Made by a program: the position numbers and the translations under genes
NCBI GenBank assembly: GCA_002269645.1
Contig: NIVC01001985.1
Location: forward strand, 156,236-215,985
Direction of reading: 5' to 3'
DNA length: 59,750 nucleotides
From: Macrostomum lignano
Taxonomy: Eukaryota
Shown: positions 10,695 through 44,478 of the stretch, one piece after another
How the letters are laid out: the number at the start of each line of letters is the position of its first letter
How positions within the stretch are numbered: the stretch's first letter is position 1
The notes under the pieces: generated by a model
What the model was told of the DNA's origin: nothing
Seen by the model: only the letters and a program-made list of their open reading frames with translations
Database searches by the model: none

Positions 10695-13600
10695 ATGGTA
10701 AGTTAGGGCCTAAGTTGAAACTGGTAAAGTTTTAAATGGTAAATTAAACTAAATAATCATTCAGTCTAATTATGTTTATCATCCTTGTCAGACTATGTTT
10801 TATCCATTCTTAGAAATTGAAAGCAAATGAAAGTAATTTAAACGAAAAACTTTGTCCTTAATTACATAAATAAACCATCAAAGCTAGTTCACATATGCTT
10901 CACTTACGACTATTGCCTAATTATCTTTTCATTGTTAGTGACAACTTTTATAGCAGCTATAAAAATATCTCATTTAACTAGCATAATTTATTACGGCAGT
11001 TATTGTATGGCTAACTTTAATTATACGAGAAATAGTTTTAAATTGCATAAAAAATTAATTCCAGATGCTATCTATTTGATTGTTAATCGATGTACATGTA
11101 AAACTTTATGCAAGTGATATTATTTGTTTGCAAATTTAAGCACACATATGACTGGGAATTTTTATTGCGTACAAAAATGCTGCATTGTATAGTATTTAAG
11201 TGAAAAATATATTATTAAGTAGACTTACTGCATGGTCTATTCCCTAACTTGACATATTTTTAAAGACAATTTCTAAAATATTTTTAGATTCATTTTATGC
11301 TACTGTTCAGCAGGCAGGGTAAACTTCGACTACAAAAGTGGTACATCTCTCAGACGGACAAGGCAAAAAAGAAGATCACTCGAGATTTGGTCACTCTTAT
11401 TCTTGCTAGAAAACCAAAGATGTGCTCCTTTTTAGAGTGGAAAGAGTTGAAGATTGTGTATAAAAGGCAAGGACACACAATACCACTGTCAGCGTCATTC
11501 TCAGATATCGCATATTTAAAAAACTCTTCATGCCATTGGTACTTTTACAGATACGCGAGTCTCTATTTCTGCTGCGCTATTGAACAGCAGGACAATGAGC
11601 TTCTCTGTCTCGAAGTCATACATCGCTATGTTGAACTTCTTGATAAGTACTTTGGAAGCGTAAGTGCTCGTACTCAATGTACTATTCAGAAGTAGATTGA
11701 CTTTGTGTTTTTTATATACAAACAAAACAGGCTTGATTTAACTTCTACAGGTCTGCGAGCTGGACATTATATTTAACTTTGAGAAAGCCTACTTTATGCT
11801 GGACGAGTTTATACTAGGCGGTGAGGTTCAGGAGACAAGCAAAAAGAACGTGTTGAAGGCCATCGCCGCGCAGGATCTGTTGCAGGAGGTAAATTCTTAA
11901 TTATCAAGGATGTTTTTTGTACAGTGCTTGCACTCCAAAAGTGCTTCTTATGTTTGCTTGATTCAATAAATGCTTCTTGTTTATTTTTAATTAACAACGA
12001 ATGAGAAACATAGCAAAAATCTAACATGCACATTCATTGCTGTATGCTTATTTTTTGCATTTAACTTTTGCGTTTAGCTTTGTCCAACTCTGCTGTTTTG
12101 ACTGTCTCAAATGGAATTCAGGTGTCTCACAAGTGTCTCAGATGTTTAAACAATGTAGATCACACATGGATTTCAGGTGTCTCATATTCCTGGAATTTTC
12201 CTTGCACACACAATAGGAGTTAAGATGTCTTACTTGGCGATTTCAGGTGTCTCACAATGGATTTCAGGTGTCTCACAATGGATTTCAGCTGTCTCACATT
12301 GGATTTCAGCTGTCTCACAATGGATTTCAGCTGTCTCACAATGGATTTCAGCTGTCTCACAATGGATTTCAGCTGTCTCACAATGGATTTCAGCTGTCTC
12401 ACAATGGATTTCAGCTGCCACACAGGGGATTTCAGGTGTCTCAAGATGGATTTAATGTGTCTCACAGGGAATTTCAGGTGTCTTACGATGGATTTCGGGT
12501 GTCTCACAATGGATTTCAGGTGCCTCACAATGAATTTCACTGCCAATCCTAATATTCCACATGGTAAATGAAGAATGTGCTTTTAGAAAGTTCAGTAGTA
12601 TTTCGCGATTAGTTCAAACTTAGCAGAGAACTGTTAAGAATTAAGCCATTTAGGACACTAAGCCACTAGGACGGAAGCTAGTAGGACTGTCCTTCCGCGC
12701 AACCAAATTCAATTCAATAAGCGACTCAACCGCCCTCCAATAAATCTAGAACGATGCCCTTTTGGAAGCGCTAAAAGAATACGGATTGATTTAACCGAGT
12801 TGCAAGAACGCCATCATGCGATTCTCTATGCATAAGTCTACTATATAGTACTATATAGAACGAGCGAAAATATTTGCGTTATCGCAAGCCGAATTATTAC
12901 TCAGAAATTTGTTTCTTTGTCAGTGTTAGAAGATCCTTGTCTTTGTTATTTCCTGACAGTTCTATTATAAACTGTTTGTCACTATACTATTAATTATATG
13001 GCTGCCAATCCTAAACTGACAAATTCACTTATTTTCAAACACGATGCACCGCATTGATGATGTTGATTTTGTACTGTATCCCACCTTCACGTGCATTCCA
13101 GCATCAATTTCATTTATATAAGTACTGTCAACTGACTTCTATAAAAAATCTAAACCATTTTTGTTAAAACTTTCAGCTATATTTTGCTAGAATTTTAAGT
13201 CCGAATATTGCAGTATTAGCGACTCGTACGAGATTAAACAAATCGAAGATACGACACAGATTTATTTTGAATAATCGGTTTTAATGACGTGTTTTTTGAA
13301 AGTTGAATCTAAAACAAATTAAACTTTGGTATATCACTTTATTATATTATGCTTATAGTTTCTGTCAGATTGACTGTCTCGATCCAAATGCTCGTAAAAT
13401 GTGTTTTACCTACCTGCCAATTGCCCTTAAATGTAACTTAATGAGAAATGGAATCTGCACATTCTCGGTCGGGATCTCGCAAGCTGGTTTCTCAATTTTC
13501 AACAGCTTCAATTTTGAACAAATAGCTGACATTCCTTTTACCCGATTGTACGTGTCTAGGTATTAATAAAATATTAATGTTTTCAATAATCATTATTAGT

Positions 13601-27330: not shown

Positions 27331-28244
27331 GGATAAAATGATGCCTCTGAAGTATCAAGCTTCATCAAAAACCATTCCCTAGACCATACGCAGAGCTCTG
27401 AAGGGAAGATGAGAGCTCAGCTATACATATAAGCTTTACAGTTAGCTTATTACTTATTAAACAGCGGCGCAAGTGTGCTGAAGAATATTCCAACAAACCG
27501 GCCCCCAAAGGCCTGGACATAGAAGATAACCATCCAGAATCCGTCACTACAAGCGTAATATAGAATTTAATAAATTGTAATGCCCATCGGGCGGACCCAG
27601 AACGCGCTCAGAATGGAATACAGCAAGTGGAATAGCTGATTAAGCCGACACGGTCTCCAGCTGCAGGCGAAGCACAAGTGACAATCGAAATTTCTCACTC
27701 TCGAGAATGCAGTGAAGCTACAGCATACGCAGCTTCTATTGCGAGAAGGGAATCGTTCTTTCTTTTAAGAAGCAGAAATTCAATCTGAATATTTGATTAC
27801 TCCTAGCTAAGGGGCAGAGAGCCAATTTTTTATCCCTGGACTTTTGGGGCTACTAGACCGTTTGCTATGTGTATCTACAGAAAATTTCTAAATAAAATTT
27901 CTTGTCAAACTACTGCTGTTAATTTGGGTGATCAGTAGTAAAATATGTGCATAAATACGACACAAACCAAGCCAACGCATTCTATATTTAACTATAAATG
28001 AACATACAAAAAGAGCACCACATAGTCAACTGTATAATTTGTTTCCGAAAAAAATATTACAAGCAATTGGAATTCTGGGAAAGCACAATAGATTTTACTA
28101 GAGCTACAAGTAATTTACAATGCATTTAGAATGGGCGGATATAAGCTGAGTTCAGGCCTGGTGTTGCCTTAGACAGAAAATCAGTACTCAGATGTCTTAA
28201 AAATGTTTCATGGTGAGGATGTCTCACAGATTTCAGGGCTGGGG

Positions 28245-29027
28245 TGTCTCAGACATTGCAGGAATAAGGGAGTCAGACATTGCAGGAATAAGGGAGTCAG
28301 ACATTGCAGGAATAAGGGTGTCTCAGACATTGCAGGAATAAGGGAGTCTCAGACATTGCAGGGATAAGGGAGTCTCAGACATTGCAGGGATAAGGGTGTC
28401 TCAGACATTGCAGGAATAAGGGAGTCAGACATTGCAGGAATAAGGGAGTCAGACATTGCAGGAATAAGGGTGTCTCAGACATTGCAGGAATAAGGGAGTC
28501 TCAGACATTGCAGGGATAAGGGAGTCTCAGACATTGCAGGGATAAGGGTGTCTCAGACATTGCAGGGATAAGGGAGTCTCAGACATTGCAGGGATAAGGG
28601 TGTCTCAGACATTGCAGGAATAAGGGAGTCTCAGACATTGCAGGAATAAGAGAGTCTCAGACATTGCAGGGATAAGGGAGTCTCAGACATTGCAGGGATA
28701 AGGGAGTCTCAGACATTGCAGGGATAAGGGTGTCTCAGACATTGCAGGAATAAGGGAGTCTCAGACATTGCAGGAATAAGAGAGTCTCAGACATTGCAGG
28801 GATAAGGGTGTCTCAGACATTGCAGGAATAAGGGAGTCTCAGACATTGCAGGGATAAGGGTGTCTCAGACATTGCAGGAATAAGGGAGTCTCAGACATTG
28901 CAGGAATAAGAGAGTCTCAGACATTGCAGGGATAAGGGTGTCTCAGACATTGCAGGAATAAGGGAGTCTCAGACATTGCAGGAATAAGGGAGTCTCAGAC
29001 ATTGCAGGAATAAGGGAGTCTCAGACA
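28245..29027. repeat. 24-26-bp minisatellite (TCTCAGACATTGCAGGAATAAGGGAG) just downstream of the TUBGCP5 stop
   Basis: About 30 tandem units. Confidence 0.96.
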
Positions 29028-29051: not shown

Positions 29052-32000
29052 TCAGGCCATGGCGGACACCAGTGGCTCGATGTGCTCAGCCAGGCCAGTC
29101 TTGGCGAAGGTGGCAACAAATGCGGCGAAAAACTGCCGGCCAGAGTCCAGCTTGGCCTGCATGGATTCAACAATGTCTGCTGTGAGCCGGTCGTCCGACC
29201 AGCGACGCGAGAACACCACGGCGGAGCGGAACAGGCCAGACATCATCTGGCGGACCCGGGGAGCCGCCGACGACTTCCCAGCGGTGGCGGCGGCGGCCTC
29301 GCCAGTGTCAATCAGGCACACCTGAGCGCATCTGGTGGCGAACTGGTCGAGAACGGAGCGCAGCTCGTCCGGCCCAGCCTGGCAGGCAGCCAGACGGTCG
29401 GGCAGATCGGCCGCAGTAGCCAGACGGTGCGCTGTGACCTGATGAAAAGCTGTCAGCAGGTGCAGCAGCTGCTGTCGAAGGCTGTACACCTGATAGCGCA
29501 GGCCGGAATCGTCGGCGCAGCGAAGGCCGTCAAAGCGGAGACGTTCGAGCAGCTCCTTGGCGCAGCGAAGCTTCAGCAGCCAGCGGAAGGACTCGGAGTA
29601 CACCTGCGCATGGCGAGTTACTACTTAAAGTAGAATACTATTTAAAGCGGCATATGAATGATTTCTAATTGGGAAAAATAGAATAACTAACAGAAATATG
29701 CCTGACCGACACTACAAGATGGTCAGGTGTGCAGCGCTGGCACCGTGGGGGTCACTGCATCCCCCAGAGGGGCGACACCAAACCTCTATTAAGCTGCGTA
29801 CTAACCGCGGCCAGCTCTACTTAACTTATACAATGCTAGATTATTGAAGAACCAATAAAAAACCATGCATACCCGCAGCGTAGTCTCCGTAAATACGACG
29901 CCAAGTGGCCAAGGCGGTTCGCAATTCAGCTTGAGGCTGTCAATCAACAGCAGGCCGCCGGCGGCCGACTCAGAGCCGTGCTCAACGGCGGCGGTGGCAG
30001 CTGGTGAAGTCAGCGTCAGCCATACGGAGTTGGCAAACTGGGCCGAGTGGCAGGCCGGCTGTCCGGCTAGCAGGCAGGCGCGCAGACTGAGATTCAGCGC
30101 CAGCTCGTCGCTGGTCGGTTGGCCGACGCGCAGTTCAGCGTAGAGCAGGTCGCACAGCGGCGTGAGCAGGTCCCGGTCAAGCATTAAGAACAGGCTGTGC
30201 GCGAATGCGACAAAGTCCGCTAAGCGAAGCTGCGGCCCGATCAGGGACTCAACAGCCAGCCGGTTCACCTGACGGCACCGGTTGCGGATCGCTGATTGGA
30301 CTAGGCGTTCGACCGAAGCGGATGTCGGCATAGCGTTGCTGTCGGAGGCCGCCGAGTCGCCGCAGTTTCCAGAAACAGCAGGCGGTGGAAGCAACTGGAC
30401 GCTGCGCCACAGGAGAGGCGCCTCCATGCGGAGCTGGTCAGCATCCGTGTGCGGCAGGGCGAGCGGGTAGCTGGGCGGATTTGAGGCGAGGATTGCACTT
30501 TTTATGCCTAATCGTAATGCTACTTGTCTAGAGACCGATTCAGAGGTCAAATCTAGAGACCGATTCAGAGGTCAAATCTAGAGACCGATTCAGAGGTCAA
30601 ATCTAGAGACCGATTCAGAGGTCAAATCTAGAGACCGATTCAGAGGTCAAATCTAGAGACCGATTCTGAGGTCAAATCTAGAGACCGATTCTGAGGTCAA
30701 ATCTAGAGACCGATTCTGAGGTCAAATCTAGAGACCGATTCTAAGGTCAAGTATAGTTGAATAATAATACACTACACCTGCCCTAATACCCCAACCGACA
30801 GCTCAGCCGCAGCTATCGCGCGGCGCATCTGAAGGCTGCGTACGGCTGTTCAGTCCAAGGACTGGGGGTTCGCCACACACCCTCAATTACCCCAGATAAT
30901 GCTGGCACCCATTTTACAGCTGGGTGAACTGAAGCAATGCAGAGTTAAGTTTCTTGCTCTTTCAGTCGTGAGTCCGACGCTTTAACCACTAGGCTACAAC
31001 CCCTAGCGGCTAATGAGCAAGGCAATACAGATTGGTTGAGGTTAGTCAAGAGGTAATCGTTATCGCCATCCAGCAACTCACCGATATTCGACCGGCGCCT
31101 CAACGGAAAACGACTGCTGACCATCGCGAACGTCAGCAAGCAGCCGGTGCAGCGGGGCCGCCTCGCCAAGCTGAGTCAAGCTTCGCCAAATTTTAGGCAG
31201 ATGCCGCCTCTCGCTGACAGCCTTTAACAGGTGGGCGGACATCGCTGCCGAGGTCAGGTCGGGCAGCAGCGGGCGCAGCAACTGCGGCACGGCCCGATCG
31301 ACAATCGGCAGCGGAGCCAGCCAGTAGGCCGACTCAGGCGGCGGGTCGGCGGGCAGCGGCGGCAGGAAGGGCAGGCCGGGCGCTGGTCCAGCTGTTCCAA
31401 CAGCGGCTGAAGGCACAGACGGAAGGCCCGCCGAGAAAAGGCGGCGTAGATTGGCGATTCGGTCAAGTCGGCTCGGGCAGCCTGGCGCTCCAGGCAGTCG
31501 AGCAGTCGAACTCCGGCTGCCGGATCTTTGACTGCCGCGTCAGCGTCCGACCAGGCCACTCTGTTGACCAACGCGGCAGCCCCGGCGATAGCGCGTTGCC
31601 ATGGCAACATGGCCGAGCGCAGGCGCATCAGACTTGACTCGGTCTCTAAGCGGAGTAAACCGTTTTGAAATGGCGCCAACAGGTCCGCATGCAGCCGGCC
31701 GGCCAGCGCCGACACCGACGGAGACAAATCAGCGCCGTTGCTACGCAACAGGCGTTCGGCTAGCAACCGCAGCCTAGCAACGGAGGTGCCCAGATTGGCG
31801 AAATCGGCTAGCAGCCGGTCAAAAGCGCCGTCGGTCAGATGAGGCATGCACCCACGGCCGGAGACCGTAACTGAAGGCGTATTGGCAGTGGAGTCCCAGG
31901 TGTACAGCATGGAGTCCCTGGACCCGGACAGCATCCAGATTGTCTCCCGGACAGCCTGGTATTGAGTCACTTCAACTCGAGCAGCTCCGGAGATGGCGCC

Positions 32001-33129
32001 GCCGGCTGGCGTTGATCGAAGAAGCAACTGCTGCCAGTCCAGACGGAGCTGGCCCCAGCGTTCCGCCTGGTGCTCGTTGCCATAGCAATCACCAACGACA
32101 CCGTTACCTGGGTCTTTCCAGTACTCCGGCTGCAGGTGTGAGCGCAGATAAGCCTGGTGCCGCTCGGCTTGCATCAGCAATGCCTGCTGTTGCTGCTGTT
32201 GTTGCTGCTGCTGCTGCTGCTCCGACGACTGTTGTTGAGGCTGTTGTGGAGGTCGCGTATTCGAGTCCCGACTTGGGCCCGCCTGAGGCTGACGTTGAGT
32301 TTGAGCATTTCGGGCTGGTCCGGAATTGGAAATCCTGCAATTGTTTGTTTGAACAGACATAAGATCATATTTTATGATCATAGATCATAAGCCCTAATAA
32401 ACCCTACTAAGAGGTTTAGTAGGGTTTAAGAGGGCGATTCTGTATGGGGCTGGGAGGGCGACTCTGAATAGAGCTGCGAGGGCGACTCTGAACAGAGCTG
32501 GGAGGGCGACTCTGAACAGAGCTCGGAGGGAACAAAAAGAGCGATTGTAAACAGTAACAAAAGCAAGTTTCCAGCACTTACGAGTTCGCATCACTATCTT
32601 CATCATCACTGCCAGACTCCGAGTCCGTCTCGCCGCCGTAGTCGGACTTGACCTCGATGCCGTCAGTCAGCAGGGCGTGCCAGTCTATAGCCGCTTCGTC
32701 GGCTGCCCGTTTTTTATCTTTCTCGGCGTCGCGCCGCTTGTCCTCGGCCTCGTCATCGGACGGGAGATCAGCGGCGGCGCCGCCGGCCCAGCAGGCCACG
32801 GGGCTGTTCGAGGAGGCCAGCAGGAATGCCAGCAGATTGTGCCGCAGCTCGCTGTCCGGCAGCAGCTGATTAAGCCGCCCAGACCGGTGCTCCAATAGTC
32901 GAGCCTCTCGGTGCATCGCGTGGACTCGCAGCTTATCGGCTAAGCCAGTCAGCTGCTGCCTGACGCCCGGCCAATCAACGCCTGCGAACCGATGATTGCG
33001 CAACGTGTGCAGACAGCGGGCCAGCGATTGGCGCCGGGTGTCTGACGCTTTGACGCCGGCGCTGGAGAATATAGCATCGGCTAGCTGTTCCAGTAGGCTG
33101 GCCTGCTCGTCTGTGACTCGGTGCGACAT
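29052..33129 (-). CDS. TUBGCP5: Gamma-tubulin complex component 5; 4 exons, about 1000 aa, one frameshift near 31385
   Basis: Exons 33129-32582, 32334-31082, about 30527-29873, 29603-29052. N-terminal HRFAGV..LADKLRVH..LLAFLLASSNSP..IDWHALL matches GCP5 (HRFLDV..LLLCLSDSP..FDWGKYL). GRIP2 motif LKLNCEPPWPLGVVF..|VYSESFRWLLKLRCAK. Exon 3 acceptor is uncertain. Confidence 0.88.
30527..30752. repeat. 25-bp minisatellite (TCTAGAGACCGATTCAGAGGTCAAA) abutting TUBGCP5 exon 3
   Basis: About 9 units. Confidence 0.95.
30773..31007 (-). mobile_element. Second copy of the tRNA/CORE-like SINE (B-box region deleted, longer body)
   Basis: Shares CTAGGGGTTGT(A/G)GCCTAGTGGT..AGCGTCGGACTCACG, TTAACTCTGCATTGCTTCAGTTCACC and the terminal GGGCAGGTGTA with 3596-3785. 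Confidence 0.8.
32430..32530. repeat. 25-bp tandem repeat (GGGCGACTCTGAACAGAGCTGGGAG) x4 in TUBGCP5 intron 1
   Basis: Direct reading. Confidence 0.85.
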
Positions 33130-33317
33130 GGCGCGCCGTGCAGGATTATGAAAAATGATAGATTCCAGCTCAAGGTTTGCGTCTTTTCTCAACTCGCTGC
33201 TCTCTAATCTCCTCCCTTCTCTTCTTTCGTCTCCTCTTCTACTTTATTCCCTCGCTTCTTTCAACCGCAACCAACTCTGCTTAACTTTCAACAGTATGAC
33301 CCGCTCGACTAGCGATT

Positions 33318-33498
33318 CTATCAATAAAAAAATTAAAGAAGGAACAAAACAGAAAAGTTGAATTTTGCGAAAAAAATAGTATATGAATTAATTGATAGAT
33401 TGAAAAATAGAAATCGATAATATGAGTATAATAACTATTGACTAACAAAAACAGGAAGGAATTTCCTTTATAAAACTCAGCTTGATATAAAATTTATT
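33318..33498 (-). promoter_or_regulatory. PAH/TUBGCP5 junction: AATAAA (33498-33493) then an unpaired 3' splice acceptor (AG 33319-33318)
   Basis: Minus strand CTTTTCTGTTTTGTTCCTTCTTTAATTTTTTTATTGATAG lies 188 nt before the GCP5 ATG. Confidence 0.5.
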
Positions 33499-33991
33499 GG
33501 CAATGAGATTTGTGGCAACAACCTGAGAACGCATTGCTGCTCCTAGCCGAGTGCGGTACACGTGAATATTTATTCTCATATTGCGAAAGGCTTTATAAGG
33601 AATATTAAATAGTTTAAATGTTTTAGATAAATATACTGAGATAGAGAGATATTGGCAAAATTGGTAAATTGTAAAAAATGCATGCAGATGAAATAATACC
33701 GGTAGGTATACTCGTGTGAAAAATATTGTTCCATTTCAAAAGTTTAATTTATCAAATGACAAACTTCAAAAATATTTTCATTTACTGATAATTTGAAACG
33801 AATCCTTGAAAGATTTGATTGAAAGATGGGCTCTGAAAACTCTATCCAGTATTATTGGCAGAAATTTTTACGCATAGAAAATGTTAATAATCCTGTATTG
33901 GTTATATTTGTTACTATTTTGACAGGAAAGGGTTTTATGTCGTAAATTAGAAGGTAGATAGGTTTACTTCAATCAAAATTTAGCCTAGATT

Positions 33992-34380
33992 GGGGCAGGA
34001 AGCGAGTGTACATTGAGGGGTTAGAGGGGGCAGGAAGCGAGTGTACATTGAGGGGTTAGAGGGGGCAGGGAGTGAGTGTACATTGAGGGGTTAGAGGGGG
34101 CAGGAAGCGAGTGTACATTGAGGGGTTAGAGGGGGCAGGGAGTAAGTGTACATAGAGGGGTTAGTGGGGGCAGGGACTTAGTGTACATAGAGGGGTTAGT
34201 GGGCAGGGAGTGAATGTACATTGAGGGGTTAGAGAGTGAGTGTGTATAGAGGGGTTAGTGGGCAGGGAGTGAGTGTACATAGAGGGGTTAGTGGGCAGGG
34301 AGTGAATGTACATAGAGGGGTTAGTGGGCAGGGAGTGAATGTACATAGAGGGGTTAGTGGGCAGGGAGTGAGTGTACACT
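33992..34380. repeat. 33-35-bp minisatellite (GGGCAGGGAGTGAATGTACATAGAGGGGTTAGT) downstream of the PAH stop
   Basis: About 11 units. Confidence 0.93.
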
Positions 34381-34527
34381 TATGGGGTTTGTGAGGGAAG
34401 GAAGCGAACGTAAAGGTCATTACTAAAAAAGAAACGAAGTTTACATTGTTCCAAACACTTCGACTATTGTATAACTCTTATTTCCGTGAACAAATTCAGT
34501 AGCAGTTTCGCTTTTTAGAAAAAAGTT

Positions 34528-37500
34528 TCAAGCGCAAGCATGAACATCTTGCAGCTTCTCCATGGCCTCGGAGACCAGGCTCAGCTCCGCAATGGAGTCG
34601 CGGACAACCTTGCGAATCTGCTTGTCAGTGTCAAGCACTTCCACACTCTGTGTGTAGGGATTGTAGCGCACGGTGAACGGACGGCCAGAGCACCTGCAGA
34701 TTGACACAGGGGATAGGCGCGTATACAGACACACTGACACACTTACAGATAGGTTAACAGCCGCACAGGCAAACAGATAGATAGATAGACAGACATACAG
34801 GTGAACAGATAAGCACGTTTCAAAGTCTCACTTAGAATAAGCGGCAATCTTTCTCTTGGCCTCTTCAAAAGACTTGGCCACAAAGTACACGGGCTGGTAC
34901 TCTGTGATTGGGTACTGCTGCACGGCGGTCTCCGGTGGCTCAAAGCTGCGCACAGTCGGCTTGTCACTCAGGCAGTACTGCAGCTCGCCGAATGAGCTCA
35001 ATAACCCGGCGCCGTAGGCCTTCAAACTGCCGTCCTGCATGCATAGGCCGAATTCTACGGTGAACCAGTAGCAGGTAGCCAGCTTCATTATGAACTCGTC
35101 GCTGGCGCCGAGGCTGGCCAGGCCGATCTCCTGGGAGAACTGGGCAAAGTCCGGATCGGCGAATAGCGGCGCGTGGCCCAGCAACTCGTGGCAGACGTCC
35201 GGCTCGGGCGTGTACAGCGGGACACTGTGGTGCCTGCCGAGTTGAAGGGAAACGTGTTAGTATAAACCCTGACAGCTCTTAGCAACATTTGGCACTTTGA
35301 GTAGAAAACCAGACAGACCCTACTCGTGCCAACGTTGTCTGACAAATCCTGACAGTCTCAGGATGAAGGACGATAAAACCTCACCATTCTCAAACAAAAC
35401 ATGAAATCGTCAAAACCACAACCCGACAACCTCATACTCGTACAAAACCTGACGAGACACCCTCCGACAGAATCTGACAACATCAGAGAAACACCTGACA
35501 TTCTCGAGCAGAACCTGAAAAGCAAAAACCTGACATCCTCTGATAGAATATACCATTTTCTGACAGAACCTGAATCCCTTAAAAAGCTGACAGAGAATCT
35601 GACATCATCTGACAGAATCTGACAGACAACCTGACATGATCCGAAAGAACCTGATATCCTCCAAAAAACCTGAAAACCTCATACTTATCCTAGCAAACTA
35701 TGACATCCTCCGTCATAAATCTGACAGCTCCCAACAAAGATGCGACAATCTCTTTGACAAAAACATGATAATCTTAAACAACCTCAAGGGAAATCCATAC
35801 AATTATAATTACAACTTTGAAGAATTGCATTAAGCGGCTTTGATAAGTATGTATCAGTGCGCCCAACTTTTACTAACAGTAGTAAATTAAAAATAAGCAT
35901 TGTTATAGTAAATTACCTAATGTACTGAGTAGAATGGAACACCCGGAAAGCGAGACCGGCCAAGAAGTCTCTCGAGCTGAGCAGGCCGGCCACAGGGCGG
36001 AGCCGGAAGCCGGTGCAGTCCTGCAGAAAGTCGGACACATCCTGCAGCTGGGGAATATTATCCTCTCTGTAGCCGCAATTGTCCATCAGCAAAGGAAACA
36101 CGTGATTAAACTCGCGACAGGCGTGAGTCGGGTAGAGTGTCACCAGCTCGCGGAATACGGTGCGCCAGGTGTTAATCTGGTAATTGATGCGCGCTTAGCT
36201 TAAATAGGCATTACAAAAATCTGAGCAATCAGTGAGCTACTGCAGACATTCTCACCCACCTGACCAATCAGTGAGCTACTGCAGACATTCTCACCCACCT
36301 GACTAATCAGTGAGCTACTGCAGACCATTCTCATCCACCTGACCAATCAGTGAGCTACTGCAGATCTTCTCACCCACCTGACTAATCAGTGAGTTACTGC
36401 AGACATTCTCACTCACCTGACCAATCAGTGAGCTACTGCAGATTATTCTCACCCACCTGATCAATCAGTGAGCTACTGCAGACCATTCTCACCCACCTGA
36501 CCAATCAGTGAGCTACTGCAGATCATTCTCACTCACCTGACCAATCAGTGAGCTACTGCAGATTATTCTCACCCACCTGATCAATCAGTGAGCTACTGCA
36601 GATCATTCTCACTCACCTGATCAATCAGTGAGCTACTGCAGACCATTCTCACCCACCTGACCAATCAGTGAGCTACTGCAGATCATTCTCACTCACCTGA
36701 CCAATCAGTGAGCTACTACAAACCATTCTCACCCACCTGATAAAGCTAAGGTGAGATACAAAACCATCCTATTTACCCAACCAGTGAGTCATATAAGTTG
36801 GAGTTAAAACCCAGGCTTTACACCACTATTGAGTACCTCTTGCTCGCTGTACTCCACCCGGGGAATTGTGTCCCCATGCCGATAATTGAAAGCGATATCG
36901 GCAAAGTACTGCCGACGGTCCCTGTACACTTTGTCGGTGAAGCCGGGATGATCGGAGTCCAATTCGTTGCCATAGCTGAGTATCTGGTTAGCAAACCGGT
37001 CCAAGTCTTTAATCTTGCGCGGAAACCAGGGAATTGAGTCGTCCGGAGCGTCGGTCTGGCTGCCAGGACTCAGCACCTGATTATTTTGGGTAATTAGGAT
37101 GAGGATTAAGAAGCAAATCAAGACAGAAATTTAACGTTTTTAGTTCAAATTCGCGCTAAAAGCTTATACATACGTGCGCAACACTGCCCCACGTAGTACT
37201 AATTACATAACGAGGCATTTAGCCTTAAAAATACAGTTACAGTTTTTCCTGCCGTTTAACCAAAATCACGTCAATCTTGCTTAGGTTTCTTTCATAGGTA
37301 AGTCGCATCTTTGGTCAAAAAGTAAATCAGAGGGGTTGCTCATGTATGATCCACTACAAGATTGCGGAGATACACAACTCGCTGAGCTGCTACCATATCA
37401 CGGCAGGGTAAACTGGAGCTCAGTTAAATTGACCGCTCGTTTACGGTGGCTGTCTTTGTATGCTGACCCAAGCCGCTTATCAAGCTTTGACTACATTGAT

Positions 37501-38508
37501 TAGATTGAGGTATGACTTGACTACTCGTAGACAAAAGATGTGACCAACGGTCAGCTAAGCCTTTCTATTTGGCCCTCGGGACTTTACAATAGCAATCTGG
37601 CCCCCGCTAATGGTTTAGATGTCTTTTCAGCTCACTTCTCAGCTCTCCCTCCCTTTTCCTTCTCTCTGTCCATGTCACTCTTGGTCTCGTTTTCCGTCTC
37701 TTCTCTCCCCCTCTACTTTATCTCTCTCTCTCTCCCTCTCTCTCGCCCGTTAACCGCTAGAGCTACTCACAGATACTAGAAAACTAGATGGGCCACTCAG
37801 CACATTTGCGTGTAAGCTACTTTCATTTCAGTAGTAAGTTAAACAGAAGCATTTTTATGTATTTTTAAAGTCAAGGCTCTTTTATTGGCATTTTATTGTA
37901 TTTTTAAAGTCAAGGTTCTTTTATTGGCATTTTATTGTATTTTTAAAGTCAAGGCTCTTTTATTGGCATTTTAATGTATTTTTAAAGTCAAGGCTCTTTT
38001 ATTGGCATTTTATGTTCATTATTGCTCAACCAATTAGCAAGTTGTTTACGCCTGCAAGCTTGGGCTTCTAAACTTATCAAAGTGATTTCAGCTGCCTTTA
38101 TTTTGGCCTCCTGTAGCGAAAGATTAGTGTCGTACTCACCTGTACATAGGTGGAGATGGCCTCCAGATCGGGCAGCAAGTCTTTCACATCGGAGGCGCTG
38201 CTGTCGCACTCGACAATAAAATCGTGACTATTAGCCACTCGCTTAGACGGCCGACTTTCGATGTGCTCCAGATTGACTTGGTGCTTTTTAAAGATTTCCA
38301 GAGCGGCACTGAGAGCGCCAACTCGTTCGGGCATGCTGAATACAATTGACACGCGTTTCAGAGTTTCCAAGCCGCTGACATAATAGCCCTGCGTGCCGGC
38401 TCGCCTGCCCTTGCCGAAGCCATCGTTGCCTTCTCCGTTAGCGGCTGGCGCCTTTTTACCGCTAGAATTATTATTATTATTACTACCGCTGGTCACGTGA
38501 GCGTCCAT
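34528..38508 (-). CDS. PAH: Phenylalanine-4-hydroxylase; 5 exons
   Basis: Exons 38508-38140, 37076-36837, 36176-35917, 35233-34832, 34693-34528, all in phase. ACT domain ([10 protein letters not shown]), [32 protein letters not shown]|[42 protein letters not shown]. Motifs are closer to PAH/Henna than to TPH or TH. Confidence 0.93.
35340..35720. repeat. Degenerate AACCTGACA/AATCTGACA-rich tandem region in PAH intron 3
   Basis: Repeated CTGACA cores. Confidence 0.65.
36225..36742. repeat. 39-40-bp minisatellite (CCAATCAGTGAGCTACTGCAGACCATTCTCACCCACCTGA) in PAH intron 2
   Basis: About 13 units. Confidence 0.95.
37855..38012. repeat. 39-bp AT-rich tandem repeat x4 in PAH intron 1
   Basis: GTATTTTTAAAGTCAAGGCTCTTTTATTGGCATTTTATT repeated. 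Confidence 0.9.
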
Positions 38509-38515
38509 AGTGCTA

Positions 38516-38618
38516 CTATAAAAGTAGTTAGTGCTGATTCGTTAGCATGAATATTAATGGTTAAAATAGGTGCATATACTACGTTTTCAAAGAAATGGAT
38601 GCTTGAATATTTTTTATT
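38516..38618 (-). promoter_or_regulatory. MRPS24/PAH junction: AATAAA (38618-38613) then branch point and acceptor CTAACTACTTTTATAG, 7 nt before the PAH ATG
   Basis: Read directly on the minus strand; about 100-nt spacing. Confidence 0.6.
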
Positions 38619-38918
38619 TAAATGGGGTTTCTTACTAGCTAGATGCAAACTGTATTGAGGAAGTGTTACTAAAACTTACTCTAATTACCCTTACTTCCCC
38701 AGCTACCCGACACTGCATAAGACCTACACCTTTAAAGTATATAGATATTTAGAAAAAAAGAAACAGCAAACGACTTTACAGAGAAAAAACAAGCAAAATA
38801 TATTACTACTGATAACAGTACTAAATGTCCAATTTTACACTAAATTGCGCAACAAATCCAGTAAACCATGGAAGCAATCGCATGATGGAACAATGCTAAA
38901 CATCTGTCTACTAGACGA

Positions 38919-40457
38919 TTAGATAAACTTGTACACTAGGTCGACCTCGCTGTCCACCGTTTGAACTTCCAGTCGTACAACGCAGCGCATGAGTAGTGAC
39001 AGCATCTCCTCAGCGTAGCCAATCAGAAATGCGTAGCGCATGCACACAATTCTAGGATTTGTGTCCATCCTGTCTCGCTGCTTTAGTAGCAGAGCAACTC
39101 GAATTGTATTGCCCTGCAAAGGATAAGGGAATACCACTGTCATAACTGGAAACTTATGCTGATGCTGAAATTGCAGTTCCTTTGTTTATAAAATCTACCC
39201 TTTGCTCGATGTCCTTGTTTTTTTACCGGTTATCCATGCTCACCTATCACCACCTCTAGCACCAGTTCGCTAATCACCACCTGAAATCTCTGTTAGCCAA
39301 TCATCCCACCTGTGTGATCCATGTTAGCCAATCACCACCTGTGTGATCCCTGTTCGCTAATCACACATGTGATCCCTGTTAGCCAATCACCACCTGCTAT
39401 CACTGTTTGCTAATCACACATGTGATCCCTGTTAGCCAATCACCACCTGTGATCCCTGTTAGCCAATCACACATGTGATCCCTGTTAGCCAATCACACAT
39501 GTGATCCCTGTTAGCCAATAACCACCTGTGATCCCTGTTAGCCAATCACTACCTGCTATCCCTGTTTGCTAATCACACATGTGATCCCTGTTAGCCAATA
39601 ACCACCTGTGATCCCTGTTAGCCAATCACTACCTGCTATCCCTGTTTGCTAATCACACATGTGATCCCTGTTAGCCAATCACCATGTGTTATCCCTGTTC
39701 GCTAATAATCACCGCCTGTTATCCCTGTTCGCTAATAATCACCACCTGTTATCCCTGTTCGCTAATAATCACCTCCTGTTATCCCTGTTCGCTAATAATC
39801 ACCTCCTGTTATCCCTGTTCGCTAATAATCACCGCCTGTTATCCCTGTTCGCTAATAATCACCACCTGTTATCCCTGTTCGCTAATAATCACCTCCTGTT
39901 ATCCCTGTTCGCTAATAATCACTACCTGTGATCTCTGTTCGCTAATAATCACCGCCTGTTATCCCTGTTCGCTAATAATCACTACCTGTGATCTCTGTTC
40001 GCTAATAACCACCACCTGTTATCCCTGTTCGCTAATAATCACCAGTCATCCCCATGCAGTCCTGAATAGACGTGCCAATTACCTGTCGCTTAATAACGAT
40101 GCACTCGGAGGCCAGCATCTCGGGAAAGGTGCCCCGCAGCAGAATGCGAATTAATTGATCCTGATAATTAGTAGTGCCAGCGTCAAAGCTCTGACTTTCG
40201 CCAAGCAAGCCGGCCGTATTCCAGCTCTGCCAGGCCTTCTGCGCCCCAATCTGCTCGGGATATTTGGCCTGCTCGTAGGTGATCGGCCTGGACCGATCGC
40301 GCGTACCTTTTAGCACGGCAGCCCGACGATTCTTCGGCGGTATTCGCCGATAAGGTTTTGGTAGCTCGCCGAATTCCCATAATCGATTGGCGCTGGTGTG
40401 CAAGGCCGATAGCTGCTGCGCCCGTTGCAGCAAGGGCGGCCGAAACGAGGAGAGTAA
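38919..40457 (-). CDS. MRPS24: Mitochondrial ribosomal protein S24 (uS3m); 2 coding exons, no genomic ATG in the first exon
   Basis: Exons 40457-40083 and 39113-38919 in phase: PITYEQAKYPEQIGAQKAWQSWNT..GTFPEMLASECIVIKRQ|GNTI..AFLIGYAEEMLSLLMRCVVRLEVQTV, matching the MRPS24 motifs TYEQA..IxHRKxW..SEIIIKR..FLIGYxEELLS..VKLEIQTV. Confidence 0.9.
39270..40045. repeat. 27-30-bp minisatellite (ATCCCTGTTCGCTAATAATCACCACCTGTT and GCCAATCA variants) filling the MRPS24 intron
   Basis: About 27 units in two variant blocks. Confidence 0.95.
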
Positions 40458-40633
40458 CTGAAAAAACGGTATAATTTAATAAAAAATAACAAGCGTATTC
40501 CTATAGACTACTGCTAATTATGTAATACTAGTAGACAATTTGCAAATAGCTAGAAAATTCAACGATAGAAAAAATGAAAAAAACGAAAACCTAATATAAA
40601 AAAACAATAATTTAGACAATTTAGACTTTTATT
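40458..40633 (-). promoter_or_regulatory. EI24/MRPS24 junction: AATAAA (40633-40628) then acceptor CCGTTTTTTCAG (AG 40459-40458)
   Basis: Read directly; the acceptor opens the MRPS24 frame in phase 0. Confidence 0.6.
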
Positions 40634-41459
40634 AAAAATTTACAGATAAATTTAGGCAATAAAATATATATACGTTACAGTGCCAAACCACACTACTGGC
40701 CAATAATCAATCTGGTTATCGGTAACATGACAGGGCGCAAAGCGGAATTTTATTTAGTCACTAGGAGGACGCTCGAAGTCTGAGAAAGCAATGTCTTCCG
40801 GGAAAAGAACATTATTCGACAAGTATTTAAAATACGCAACGAATATAAGTACACTTGTAGTATGAAACGAGTCGAATTAAAATGACACGAATCATAAAGA
40901 CTCGCATTGCACTCTGCAATAGAGATCAAATTCAATATCAGACACGGCAGGTGGAGAAAACAAATGAAAGCGACGAAATACATACTTTTGTAACCTCTAA
41001 ACAACGAGCGAATCTGTTAACACCATATGGTCCAAGCTGATTGGCCGTACAGGCATGGGGAAGGGTTTACTGACTTCTGATTGGTCGGAAGACAAATAAA
41101 ACGTACTTAATGACCCCTTAGCGATAGATTAAAAACACGATGAAAATCGGCGAACAACAGGCAAACAGACTTGCATGTGCAATGCAACAGCACAATTGTA
41201 ACACAAAGACTATGAAAGAACGAAAGTTGATTTCCAATTTAAACATATGCAAGTCACGTCATTCAAAAAGCAGCCATTAACAGACCAAGTCGATCAAGCT
41301 CAGTTGAAAGAATCATAAAAGAGCATATTCCACTCATAGCGAAGCCTTCGCTGGGAGCAATACAAAAAGCTATATATATATACATGATAAGAAGAAAAAC
41401 AACTGGGGATTTCATCCCCATTTTGGGAAAATTGACAAATTCAGAATTAAAAATTAGTT

Positions 41460-43833
41460 TCAGACACGATCCGGCACTACCAACAGGATTCTGTTGATCA
41501 GGTACAGGGAAGGCTTCATCAGTGGCAGCGGAATAGGCGCTCTGAAATTATAAAGTAGTTATGATAACAGATGTTAAAAATATTTCGCTACTTATGCTAC
41601 TATTAGTAAGCGAAAGTTGTTCTTCTGACTTTTACGGTCACGTGACATAAAAAAACTTATTTAAAATGCAATATAAAAGTGCCAAAACCTGAGTGCGTGT
41701 CCGCTCACCTGTACAGTCGATAATATTGCGCGCACAATGCGCTCACAATGCAGATCGGATAGCAGATTGACAGGAAACAGATCGACAGGCCGTACCAGGG
41801 CGACAGCCATGTGATAAGAGCCATAGGCAGACCGAATGCAAGAAAATATGGCCAGTGATGCTCGATGTACATGGCGCGACTTTGGAATACCATGCCTGTC
41901 GGGCAGCATACAAGTGAAATGGATAGGCTTTCCGCAAACTTTCAGTTTCTATCTCCCATTTGATGCCATTTTTGACATCCCCTGTCTCCTATCTGATGCC
42001 ATTTTTGACATCCCCAATCTTCCATTTGATGCCATTTTTGACATCCTCTATCTCCAATCTGATGCCATTTTTGACATCTCCTATCTCTTATCTGATGCCA
42101 TTTTTGACATCTCCTATCTCTGATCTGATGCCATTTTTGACATCCCCTATCTCTGATCTGATGCCATTCTGATGCCATTTTTGACATCCTCTATCTCTGA
42201 TCTGATGCCATTTTTGACATCCTCTATCTCTGATCTGATGCCATTCTGATGCCATTTTTGACATCCCCTATCTCTGATCTGATGCCATTTTTGACATCCC
42301 CTATCTCTGATCTGATGCCATTCTGATGCCATTTTTGACATCCCAATCTTGGGATCTCTGGGCTTTGAACTCACCCCTGCTAGACCAGCGATAGTCAAAC
42401 ACGTACAGAGAGTAGAGCAGGCACATGTGGCACAGGTAAAGCAGCTCGGACACAAGCGGCACGGGGATTTGCCTGGCCAATTTAGCCTGACACAGAAACA
42501 GCAGTTCAACTAATAGGCCGTAGGCTTGATCAGCCAAAACCTTGCCAATCCGTTTGCCGTCTCCGGTGCGCTGCTCTCGCTTAGCAACAATATAAACCAG
42601 CTGGCCGACATCTTTAAATGAGAAATAATTCACTACTTCCAATACGACCACTACTGGCAGAATCCACAGCGCATTAAATAGCCAGGTAATTATTGGCACA
42701 AGGTAGTCGCTAACCCAGGGACCTTGAAACCGGTCGGCCGTCCACAGTAGCACCGGCAGCACCATCAGGTTAAATACCAGCACACTGCACTGTCATTTAT
42801 ATGTTGAACATAAAAATGAAATTTTGTCAAGAGTTAATGCTTGTAATTGACCGGAAGTGGGCGGGGCACAGAACTATAACAGTTTAAACAAATCGACAAA
42901 TACAAATAAGTGGCCAGGTTAGAAAACTTACGCCAAGAACTACTGCGTTCCAAAACCACGTGCGCTTGATTGTGCCGATAAGGGACAGTTTACTGGAATA
43001 CAATTTACAGCGGGGTTGCTATTGAACCGACCGGAGCGTGTCACAGGTTATGCAGCACTAGGGTGCGCAGAAATGTAGAAAAAAATGCGCTAAAATGCTG
43101 AATTTGAAATGTTAAACGATTCTGGTCTTGCCTTCAAGGCAAACGAAAGCTTCCATAGACAACTGAAGGACAAACCGCTAAATGACTCGCGAAACAGGTC
43201 ATTGTATTTCTTGAGCAGTCATTATCCACACTCCCATGAACTCTTGAGCATCTGTCGTTACCTGCACTCTCGTGAACCCTTGAGCATTGGTCATTACCCG
43301 CACTCCCATGAACTCTTGAGCATTGGTCATTATCATTACTCGCACTCCCATGAACTCGTGAACATTGGTCATTACCCGCACTCTCACGAACTCTTGAGCA
43401 TTGGTCATTACCCGCACTCCCATGAACTCTTGAGCATTGGTCATTACCCGCACTCCCATGAACTCTTGAGCATTGGTCATTACCCGCACTCCCATGAACT
43501 CGTGAGCATTGGTCATTACCCGCACTCCCACGAACTCTTTGAGTATTTGTCATTGCCTGCAACCATCTACTGATGATTGGCACAAGTATAAAAAATAAAA
43601 CACCCTACTAATTAACTAAACATATTAACTTACTCCTTTGTCTCCTTGGCCTGTATGTAGGATCTCTGCGATCTAGGATCCATCTGGCTTGCTCTGTAAG
43701 CCTCTATGCGGGCATTGAGCGAGCGAAGCTGCACCAAGCCAGTAAAACAGTCGCGCAGGCCAGCAGCAAATCCATACAAATAATGAAGAGATGACAACTC
43801 TGCTGCTGTACTGGGACTACTGGAGCTTTGCAT
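41460..43833 (-). CDS. EI24: Etoposide-induced protein 2.4 (EI24, autophagy membrane protein); 5 exons
   Basis: Exons 43833-43634, 43177-43132 (GC donor), 42789-42375, 41895-41709, 41541-41460, all in phase. FAAGLRDCFTGLVQLRSLNARI (cf. LARGIKDSIWG..LDARI), LWILP..VVN..FKDV, HMCLLYSLYVFDYRW, IEHHWPYFLAFGLP. Confidence 0.88.
41955..42345. repeat. 33-bp minisatellite (TGATGCCATTTTTGACATCCCCTATCTCTGATC) in EI24 intron 3
   Basis: About 11 units. Confidence 0.93.
43205..43545. repeat. 36-bp minisatellite (CATTACCCGCACTCCCATGAACTCTTGAGCATTGGT) in EI24 intron 1
   Basis: About 9 units. Confidence 0.93.
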
Positions 43834-44292
43834 TGCAGTAAAATTTCCCTATGTACAGTTAAACTTTTCAGTCAGACTGTATAGGTGCTGGTCAGGCACA
43901 ATATTATTCCACAGTATAGATTGAAGCACTTTAGCATGTGCCTAGATTATTTATCTGAAACTGAATGTTTTCAGCTTAGTATAAATAAAGGCTGAATATG
44001 AATCAAAATATACTACATGTCGATTTTATTAATGCAAAAAAGTTAAAATAAGCCAAATACTTGTTTTAATGCCTTCATATAAACAAAATCTAATGTGTTA
44101 CATTTAAATATAAATGATAATATTTTAACACTAGCTACTTAAAATAAATGGGACTTAGAAGACTTAAAAGATCATACAGCCCTTGAGTATTGAGTTTATG
44201 GATACATAAGGATAAAGGAATAGATATGAATGAATATAAATATTTTCAAAGCTTTTGTCAAAACTGTTAAGACTCCATAGTCACAGAAAATT

Positions 44293-44478
44293 CTAGCATA
44301 GAAAATGGTCTAGCACTGCATTATCTAGCACAGTGCAGCATAGAAAATGGTCTAGCACTGCATTATCTAGCACAGTGCAGAATAGAAAATGGTCTAGCAC
44401 TGCATTATCTAGCACAGTGCAGCATAGAAAATGGTCTAGCACTGCATTATCTAGCACAGTGCAGCATAGAAAGTGGTC
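44293..44478. repeat. 42-bp tandem repeat x4 (GCATAGAAAATGGTCTAGCACTGCATTATCTAGCACAGTGCA)
   Basis: Direct reading. Confidence 0.92.

Follow-up and report, generated by a model that had tools for sequence, protein, structure and literature searches.

Four adjacent minus-strand genes of the flatworm Macrostomum lignano, namely EI24, MRPS24, PAH (phenylalanine hydroxylase), and GCP5 (TUBGCP5, gamma-tubulin complex component 5), probably form an operon that is resolved by spliced leader (SL) trans-splicing, a reading to which we assign a probability of about 80%. The genes are located within a stretch of 59,750 nt from contig NIVC01001985.1 (assembly GCA_002269645.1, positions 156,236 to 215,985 of the forward strand), which is referred to here as the window and to which the coordinates apply. 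A preliminary description of this DNA had already proposed that the genes are transcribed as one polycistronic unit, which SL trans-splicing then resolves. This proposal is supported by the published annotation, which numbers the four genes of a sister locus as g1 to g4, and by the deposited coding sequence (CDS) of MRPS24, which starts directly at the predicted acceptor. The presence of the SL on the downstream mRNAs has indirect support from the CDSs of MRPS24 and PAH, whose 5'-partial ends lie at putative CAG acceptors or beside them, as well as from MRPS24 having no ATG of its own. The parts of this reading that we infer are transcription from just one promoter, the precise positions of the poly(A) sites, and the use of the SL at GCP5 and EI24.

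The Four Genes Are Annotated as One Transcriptional Unit

Gene models were rebuilt with canonical GT-AG introns and compared to the deposited proteins by exact look-up, and the gene identities were checked by Pfam and PDB searches. The following coding regions were obtained:

41460-43833, minus strand: EI24 coding region, gene 1; 5 exons (43833-43634, 42992-42932, 42789-42375, 41895-41709, 41541-41460), 314 aa
38919-40457, minus strand: MRPS24, gene 2; exons 40457-40083 and 39113-38919, open from the first exon base
34528-38508, minus strand: PAH coding region, gene 3; exons 38508-38140, 37076-36837, 36176-35917, 35233-34832, and 34693-34528, 478 aa from the ATG
29052-33129, minus strand: GCP5 coding region, gene 4; exons 33129-32582, 32334-31082, 30470-29873, and 29603-29052

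The rebuilt models of EI24, MRPS24, and PAH are exact translations of deposited proteins. The spliced EI24 model is identical to PAA61942, PAA61953, and PAA66933 (Mlig010485g1, Mlig007410g1) and matches the Pfam family PF07264 (EI24, 1.9e-10), whereas MRPS24 matches PF14955 (MRP-S24, 1.3e-38). The PAH model corresponds exactly to PAA61943 (Mlig007410g3) and, with 8 additional N-terminal residues, to PAA61951; its top PDB matches are the human and rat PAH (6e-176). GCP5 matches the Pfam families GCP_C_terminal and GCP5-Mod21_C, with human GCP5 as the top PDB match. These assignments confirm that the tandem consists of four functionally unrelated genes, as had been described before. In agreement with the GenBank gene list of the scaffold, the genes follow each other in the order EI24 > MRPS24 > PAH > GCP5 without any opposite-strand gene in between. 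No coding sequence was evident in the 16 kb upstream of EI24, and on the other side no convincing coding sequence of a fifth gene was found at 12.5-29 kb on both strands, suggesting that the unit ends with GCP5.

A second copy of the locus (L001) is present on scaffold NIVC01001520.1. Comparison with positions 28919-50457 of the window (L002, 100% identical to NIVC01001985.1) revealed 92-99% identity and the same gene order. The occurrence of two copies is explained by M. lignano being a recent hidden polyploid (PMC10468722). The deposited genes carry the following tags:

Sister scaffold: EI24 Mlig010485g1, MRPS24 Mlig010485g2 (partial), PAH Mlig010485g3 (partial), GCP5 Mlig010485g4; consecutive protein accessions PAA66933 to PAA66930
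Window scaffold: EI24 Mlig007410g1; PAH Mlig007410g3 (478 aa, complete) and Mlig022443g3 (486 aa, partial); MRPS24 PAA61952

In the genome paper, RNA-seq data were assembled into "transcriptional units", about 7% of which were polycistronic precursors, and the TBONE pipeline cut these units into genes by SL-read and poly(A)-read signals only (PMC5730564). The legend of supplementary figure 5 illustrates the naming rule by the unit Mlig030697.1, which holds the genes Mlig030697.g1 and.g2 (PMC5730564). The tags Mlig010485 g1-g4 thus mean that exactly this four-gene unit was the output of the authors' RNA-based pipeline. The operon is therefore already recorded in GenBank locus tags and is an ordinary member of a well-described class. 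An individual discussion of it, or of its locus tags, was not found in the papers and supplements searched.

An older gene model, UniRef A0A1I8GI44 (P0010, 1764 aa), fuses the open reading frames (ORFs) of EI24, MRPS24, PAH, and GCP5. It links EI24 straight to the first codon past the acceptor at 40457 and has a further exon boundary at 33140. Gene predictors often fuse ORFs across operons. Two further models of 979 aa (P0005, P0011) probably represent fusions of the first three genes, judging from their length and their PAH name, and such chimeric models draw unrelated proteins into a single 90% sequence cluster.

MRPS24 Would Obtain Its Start Codon From the Spliced Leader

The strongest in-sequence evidence for the operon is MRPS24. 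Its deposited CDS (PAA61952/PAA66932, "Mlig010485g2, partial") encodes 189 aa, and its first position is 40457, directly behind the sequence ttttttCAG; this is exactly the exon start that had been predicted in the preliminary description. A protein search likewise returned a 100% identical deposited protein, "BOX15_Mlig010485g2, partial". The MRPS24 frame is shut upstream by a TAA at 40478-40476 and then, across one intron, stays open between 40457 and the stop at 38919. No in-frame genomic ATG precedes the Pfam MRP-S24 domain (residues 46-190).

M. lignano uses a single 35-nt SL, CGGTCTCTTACTGCGAAGACTCAATTTATTGCATG, which ends in ATG (PMC8629364). If this leader is joined to the acceptor at 40457 (...GCAUG to UUACUC), the SL ATG and the MRPS24 frame together yield a protein of 190 aa that begins with M-LLSSFRPPLLQRAQQLSALHTSANRLW.... 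Since MRPS24 lacks a start codon of its own while its frame is open from the first base of the exon, initiation would have to take place at the SL AUG. Based on the genome sequence and on the CDS being flagged as "partial", we infer that the SL supplies the MRPS24 start codon. Among the 42 residues of its predicted leader are five arginines, and the first 28 positions are free of acidic residues, a basic composition that resembles that of a mitochondrial leader. In shark MRPS24, the leader ahead of the homologous region measures 38 residues. Initiation at the SL AUG is established for flatworms, namely for Schistosoma mansoni (Cheng 2006, as cited in PMC9851317). MRPS24 would thus present a clean case of a mitochondrial ribosomal protein gene that is untranslatable without trans-splicing and that receives its start codon from the leader. 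In this context, the "partial" CDSs would be artefacts of SL trimming. Together with the frame-shifted GCP5 copies described below, these SL-trimmed "partial" CDSs constitute annotation problems for users of the locus.

Spacers Between Poly(A) Signals and Acceptors

The three gene junctions contain the following elements, where spacer lengths were counted from the AATAAA hexamer and not from mapped poly(A) sites:

40628-40633, minus strand: AATAAA, candidate EI24 poly(A) signal; a second copy at 40754-40749; the same in the sister locus
40458-40627, minus strand: intercistronic spacer 1 (EI24-MRPS24), 170 nt, 51% T, 23.5% GC; ends in ttttttCAG (CAG at 40460-40458)
38613-38618, minus strand: AATAAA, candidate MRPS24 poly(A) signal; the only AATAAA in the MRPS24 3' untranslated region (UTR)
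33493-33498, minus strand: AATAAA, candidate PAH poly(A) signal; a second copy at 33574-33569
33318-33492, minus strand: spacer 3 (PAH-GCP5), 175 nt, 51% T, 22% GC; ends in gaTAG (TAG at 33320-33318), candidate GCP5 acceptor

In the MRPS24-PAH spacer, 97 nt separate the AATAAA at 38613-38618 from the sequence tttaTAG at 38518-38516. All hexamers and acceptors that had been listed previously are thus present on the minus strand with the spacings given (170, 97, and 175 nt). It also holds that the acceptors have no obvious donor partner, since no GT[AG]AG donor occurs in any of the three spacers; spacers 1 and 3 in addition contain no ATG. With the two possible PAH acceptors taken into account (see below), the distances from AATAAA to acceptor amount to 170, 78-97, and 175 nt, which are all below the 1 kb operon limit and close to the mode of about 100 bp. 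In M. lignano, about 30% of the genes are trans-spliced and about 15% are located in operons of 2-9 genes, the repeat-adjusted operon spacers peak near 100 bp, and the acceptor motif is [T/C]TNCAG (PMC8629364). The MRPS24 acceptor ttttttCAG fits this published motif.

The hexamer AATAAA occurs about once per kb and strand in the window. In a chance test, the 400 nt upstream of each acceptor were shuffled and occurrences of AATAAA 95-180 nt upstream were counted. Such a placement arose in 4.4%, 6.4%, and 6.6% of the trials for the three acceptors, so that finding the spacing at three of three junctions exceeds chance, with the limitation that the acceptors were picked after the fact.

The acceptors had been called strong, and this was assessed by the percentile of T content or pyrimidine tract among all AG sites in the window. 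The description is appropriate for GCP5 and MRPS24, whose T content lies at the 99.9th and 98th percentile, respectively, whereas the PAH site is only moderate and the pyrimidine tract of the EI24 candidate lies at the 30th percentile. All ten cis acceptors in the four genes are CAG, and among the four trans sites proposed earlier only that of MRPS24 is a CAG.

The 5' Ends of PAH and EI24

For PAH, the annotation points to a different acceptor from the one suggested earlier. The two sites are as follows:

38534-38536, minus strand: CAG acceptor implied by the 5'-partial PAH CDS; the exon start would be 38533
38516-38518, minus strand: acceptor tttaTAG proposed in the preliminary description; located behind cACTAAC and a short run of pyrimidines, and unused by the deposited models

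The deposited protein PAA61951 ("Mlig022443g3, partial", 486 aa) starts at 38532, one base past the CAG of gaatCAG. The acceptor placed at 38516 is therefore not the one indicated by the annotation, which favors the CAG 18 nt upstream (38536-38534), and the TAG at 38518-38516 may be an alternative site. The PAH CDS of the sister locus begins about 3 nt further downstream, and owing to this shift the annotated boundaries can be regarded as accurate only to a few bases. From either PAH acceptor, an SL AUG would meet a stop within 1-6 codons. Judged from the sequence, PAH translation would use its own ATG at 38508.

For EI24, the acceptor proposed earlier is this one:

43849-43851, minus strand: caTAG, 15 nt ahead of the ATG at 43833; it doubles as an in-frame upstream stop

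The site is present at the expected distance, but it is weak and conflicts with the annotation. In GenBank, the three EI24 CDSs all begin with the ATG at 43833 and are complete, none of them being 5'-partial. PAH indicates how the annotation behaves, in that CDSs without an in-frame upstream stop run to the mRNA 5' end and are called partial. As the EI24 CDSs are complete and their in-frame stop is the acceptor TAG itself, the annotated mRNA would have to begin upstream of 43849. Going by the behavior seen for PAH, it is thus unlikely that the annotated EI24 mRNA starts at the TAG at 43851-43849. A CAG at 43879-43877 is one candidate for the EI24 acceptor. The 15 nt before the EI24 ATG (43834-43848, minus strand; GGAAATTTTACTGCA) contain TTACTGC, which also occurs in the SL, and are similar to the 3' end of the latter (AATTTATTGCATG), a likeness that is probably due to chance (~0.03).

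The 5' End of GCP5 and Frame-Breaking Indels

The deposited GCP5 CDS of the window scaffold is 5'-partial from 33138 (RRAM...), and just one canonical GT-AG intron fits its annotated range and length. No AG occurs within 30 nt upstream of 33138, so that a canonical trans-splice site does not coincide with the annotated start, which could reflect either the initiation of transcription or merely the position where read coverage stopped. The acceptor at 33318 that had been proposed for GCP5 is present and T-rich, but the annotated CDS starts 179 nt downstream of it. Between this candidate acceptor and the ATG lies a putative 5' UTR:

33130-33317, minus strand: purine-rich stretch of 188 nt, putative GCP5 5' UTR

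These 188 nt contain no ATG, compared with about four expected from shuffles (P = 0.013), which fits a GCP5 5' UTR beginning at the T-rich acceptor 33318. GCP5 is counted as a member of the unit on account of being tagged g4 in the sister locus, where this interval shows 99.8% identity. As side observations, the larger stretch of 404 nt before the GCP5 start codon (33130-33533, minus strand) also has no ATG, with about 8.5 expected from shuffles (P ~0.0002), and the upstream stretch contains a purine-rich (GA) block at 33180-33300.

Both assembled GCP5 copies are broken, at different places, as they carry different frame-breaking indels. In the window, 19 bp are missing from exon 2 relative to the sister copy near 31389 (minus strand), which breaks the frame. 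Microhomology (GGACC/CGACC) borders the deletion on both sides, and the deposited protein of 545 aa ends in an out-of-frame tail. The deletion is probably real, since it is also found in the gene model of the older ML2 assembly. In the sister copy, one C is lost from a C-run in exon 1 (position 19070 of L001, corresponding to 32803 of the window), and the annotated protein starts at an internal Met.

Weighing of the Operon Against Alternative Explanations

If the four genes form an operon, transcription would start upstream of EI24 and proceed through all four genes. Each upstream message would be cleaved and polyadenylated past an AAUAAA-type signal, and about 60-150 nt further on the 35-nt SL would be trans-spliced to an acceptor that has no cis donor, whereby the downstream message would receive a capped 5' end. 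For MRPS24 the SL would also give the start codon, whereas in PAH the SL AUG would open an upstream frame of a single codon and the gene's own ATG would be used.

Several observations weigh against this reading. The support at the RNA level is second-hand, as it comes via annotation names and CDS boundaries, and units assembled from short reads can join neighboring genes through read-through or overlapping UTRs. The comparison of the two loci is mute on constraint, because their spacers are 98-100% identical, and it is thus uninformative for conserved signals. Furthermore, the MRPS24 AATAAA is changed to AACAAA in the sister locus (L001 ~12070), which makes the role of this hexamer uncertain; the MRPS24 poly(A) signal would be either a variant hexamer or located elsewhere. 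Finally, with the GCP5 CDS being 5'-partial at 33138 without an adjoining AG, the 5' end of gene 4 may be of another kind.

This last point leads to the alternative that EI24, MRPS24, and PAH form the operon and that most GCP5 expression comes from a separate start site some 10 nt upstream of the ATG (a CA dinucleotide at 33139-33140), the gene being linked to the others by read-through only. Such an arrangement would account for the deposited start at 33138, for the lack of an AG in the 30 nt upstream of it, and for the exon boundary at 33140 of the older fused model. It would also go along with the PAH-GCP5 interval being the longest of the three, with 1.4 kb from stop to ATG including a minisatellite. 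However, the sister GCP5, which is 99.8% identical here, is g4 of one common unit, the ATG-free 188 nt (see above) are expected of a 5' UTR that reaches the acceptor 33318, and 33138 could simply be the end of read coverage. We therefore consider an independently expressed GCP5 unlikely. In our view rather improbable is the idea of a hybrid GCP5 that is transcribed as part of the polycistron and in addition by means of an internal promoter, with a start that lies some 10 nt ahead of the ATG and does not involve the SL; under the same proposal, the indels may indicate a decay of GCP5 after the recent genome duplication. If this were true, the hybrid GCP5 would be an example of a flatworm operon with an internal promoter, comparable to the hybrid operons of Caenorhabditis elegans.

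It could also be that each gene has a separate promoter in or just past the upstream 3' UTR and that four monocistronic pre-mRNAs with short outrons are SL trans-spliced, without co-transcription of the neighbors. About 60% of the trans-spliced M. lignano genes do lie outside operons (PMC8629364). On the other hand, the published assembly places the four genes within a single transcriptional unit, a promoter plus an outron would hardly fit into spacers of 78-175 nt, and the spacers fall into the ~100-bp mode that sets operon pairs apart from other gene pairs, so that this explanation is very unlikely. Hardly any credence is given to conventional genes without SL, whose cis-spliced 5' exons (including an ATG for MRPS24) would be hidden in the upstream 3' UTRs. 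An ATG followed by GT does exist at 41026 in the EI24 3' UTR, but spacers 1 and 3 have neither an ATG nor a consensus donor, and the RNA-seq-based annotation contains no such exons and leaves MRPS24 and PAH 5'-partial at the acceptors. A cis-spliced 5' exon as the source of the MRPS24 ATG was rejected as unlikely.

Comparison With Known Spliced Leader Systems

An SL trans-spliced operon of the four genes agrees with the M. lignano operons reported previously (PMC5730564, PMC8629364), given the same organism and the same locus, genes on one strand, spacers near the 100-bp mode, and a YTNCAG acceptor at MRPS24. Conserved housekeeping genes are found in those operons as they are here, and nothing essential differs; the present operon is known as a database annotation only. 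Genome-wide, about 10,458 M. lignano genes are in operons, with up to nine genes each. SL2 operons of C. elegans are alike in having a poly(A) signal about 100 nt before the acceptor, a U-rich spacer, and 2 to 8-9 unrelated genes. In contrast to these, M. lignano is reported to have a single SL for all sites, which ends in AUG, and a specialized SL2 has not been described for it. The locus is not classed as a C. elegans-type SL2 operon. The case of MRPS24 resembles the SL AUG of Schistosoma in that the gene is open from its first exon base without a start codon of its own. It is different in its foundation: the trematode case is built on cDNAs and translation assays, whereas that of MRPS24 is built on the genome sequence and the "partial" flag. 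The significance beyond the locus is small, but the result illustrates that an actual operon can be recognized from nothing but the raw sequence.

Other Features of the Window

Almost every intron or 3' UTR of the four genes contains a minisatellite, with units of 25-44 bp in 4-30 copies. The minisatellites of the region are located at the following positions:

28242-29027, minisatellite
30527-30750, minisatellite
33993-34378, minisatellite
36221-36740, minisatellite
37849-38013, minisatellite
39271-40044, minisatellite
41949-42344, minisatellite
43218-43561, minisatellite
44295-44478, minisatellite

Their copy numbers vary between the two paralogous loci, and they inflate gene and spacer lengths, as has likewise been noted for the M. 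lignano genome in the operon paper (PMC8629364). GCP5 intron 2 contains a stretch at 30780-31010 (minus strand) with a tRNA-like start (gggttgtagcctagtggttaaagcgtcggactc...), which received no ARAGORN or Rfam call and may be a tRNA-derived short interspersed element (SINE). An SL RNA gene was not found in the window, as an Rfam search, a tRNA scan, and a search with the SL sequence were all negative. A long CTG/CAG-type repeat at 1368-1850 reads as poly-Leu or poly-Val. Elsewhere in the window, there is an ORF with an OST-HTH/LOTUS domain at 3944-4807 on the minus strand (2.9e-19), as well as the first exon of a clathrin adaptor small chain at 11297-11695 on the plus strand (2.2e-31).

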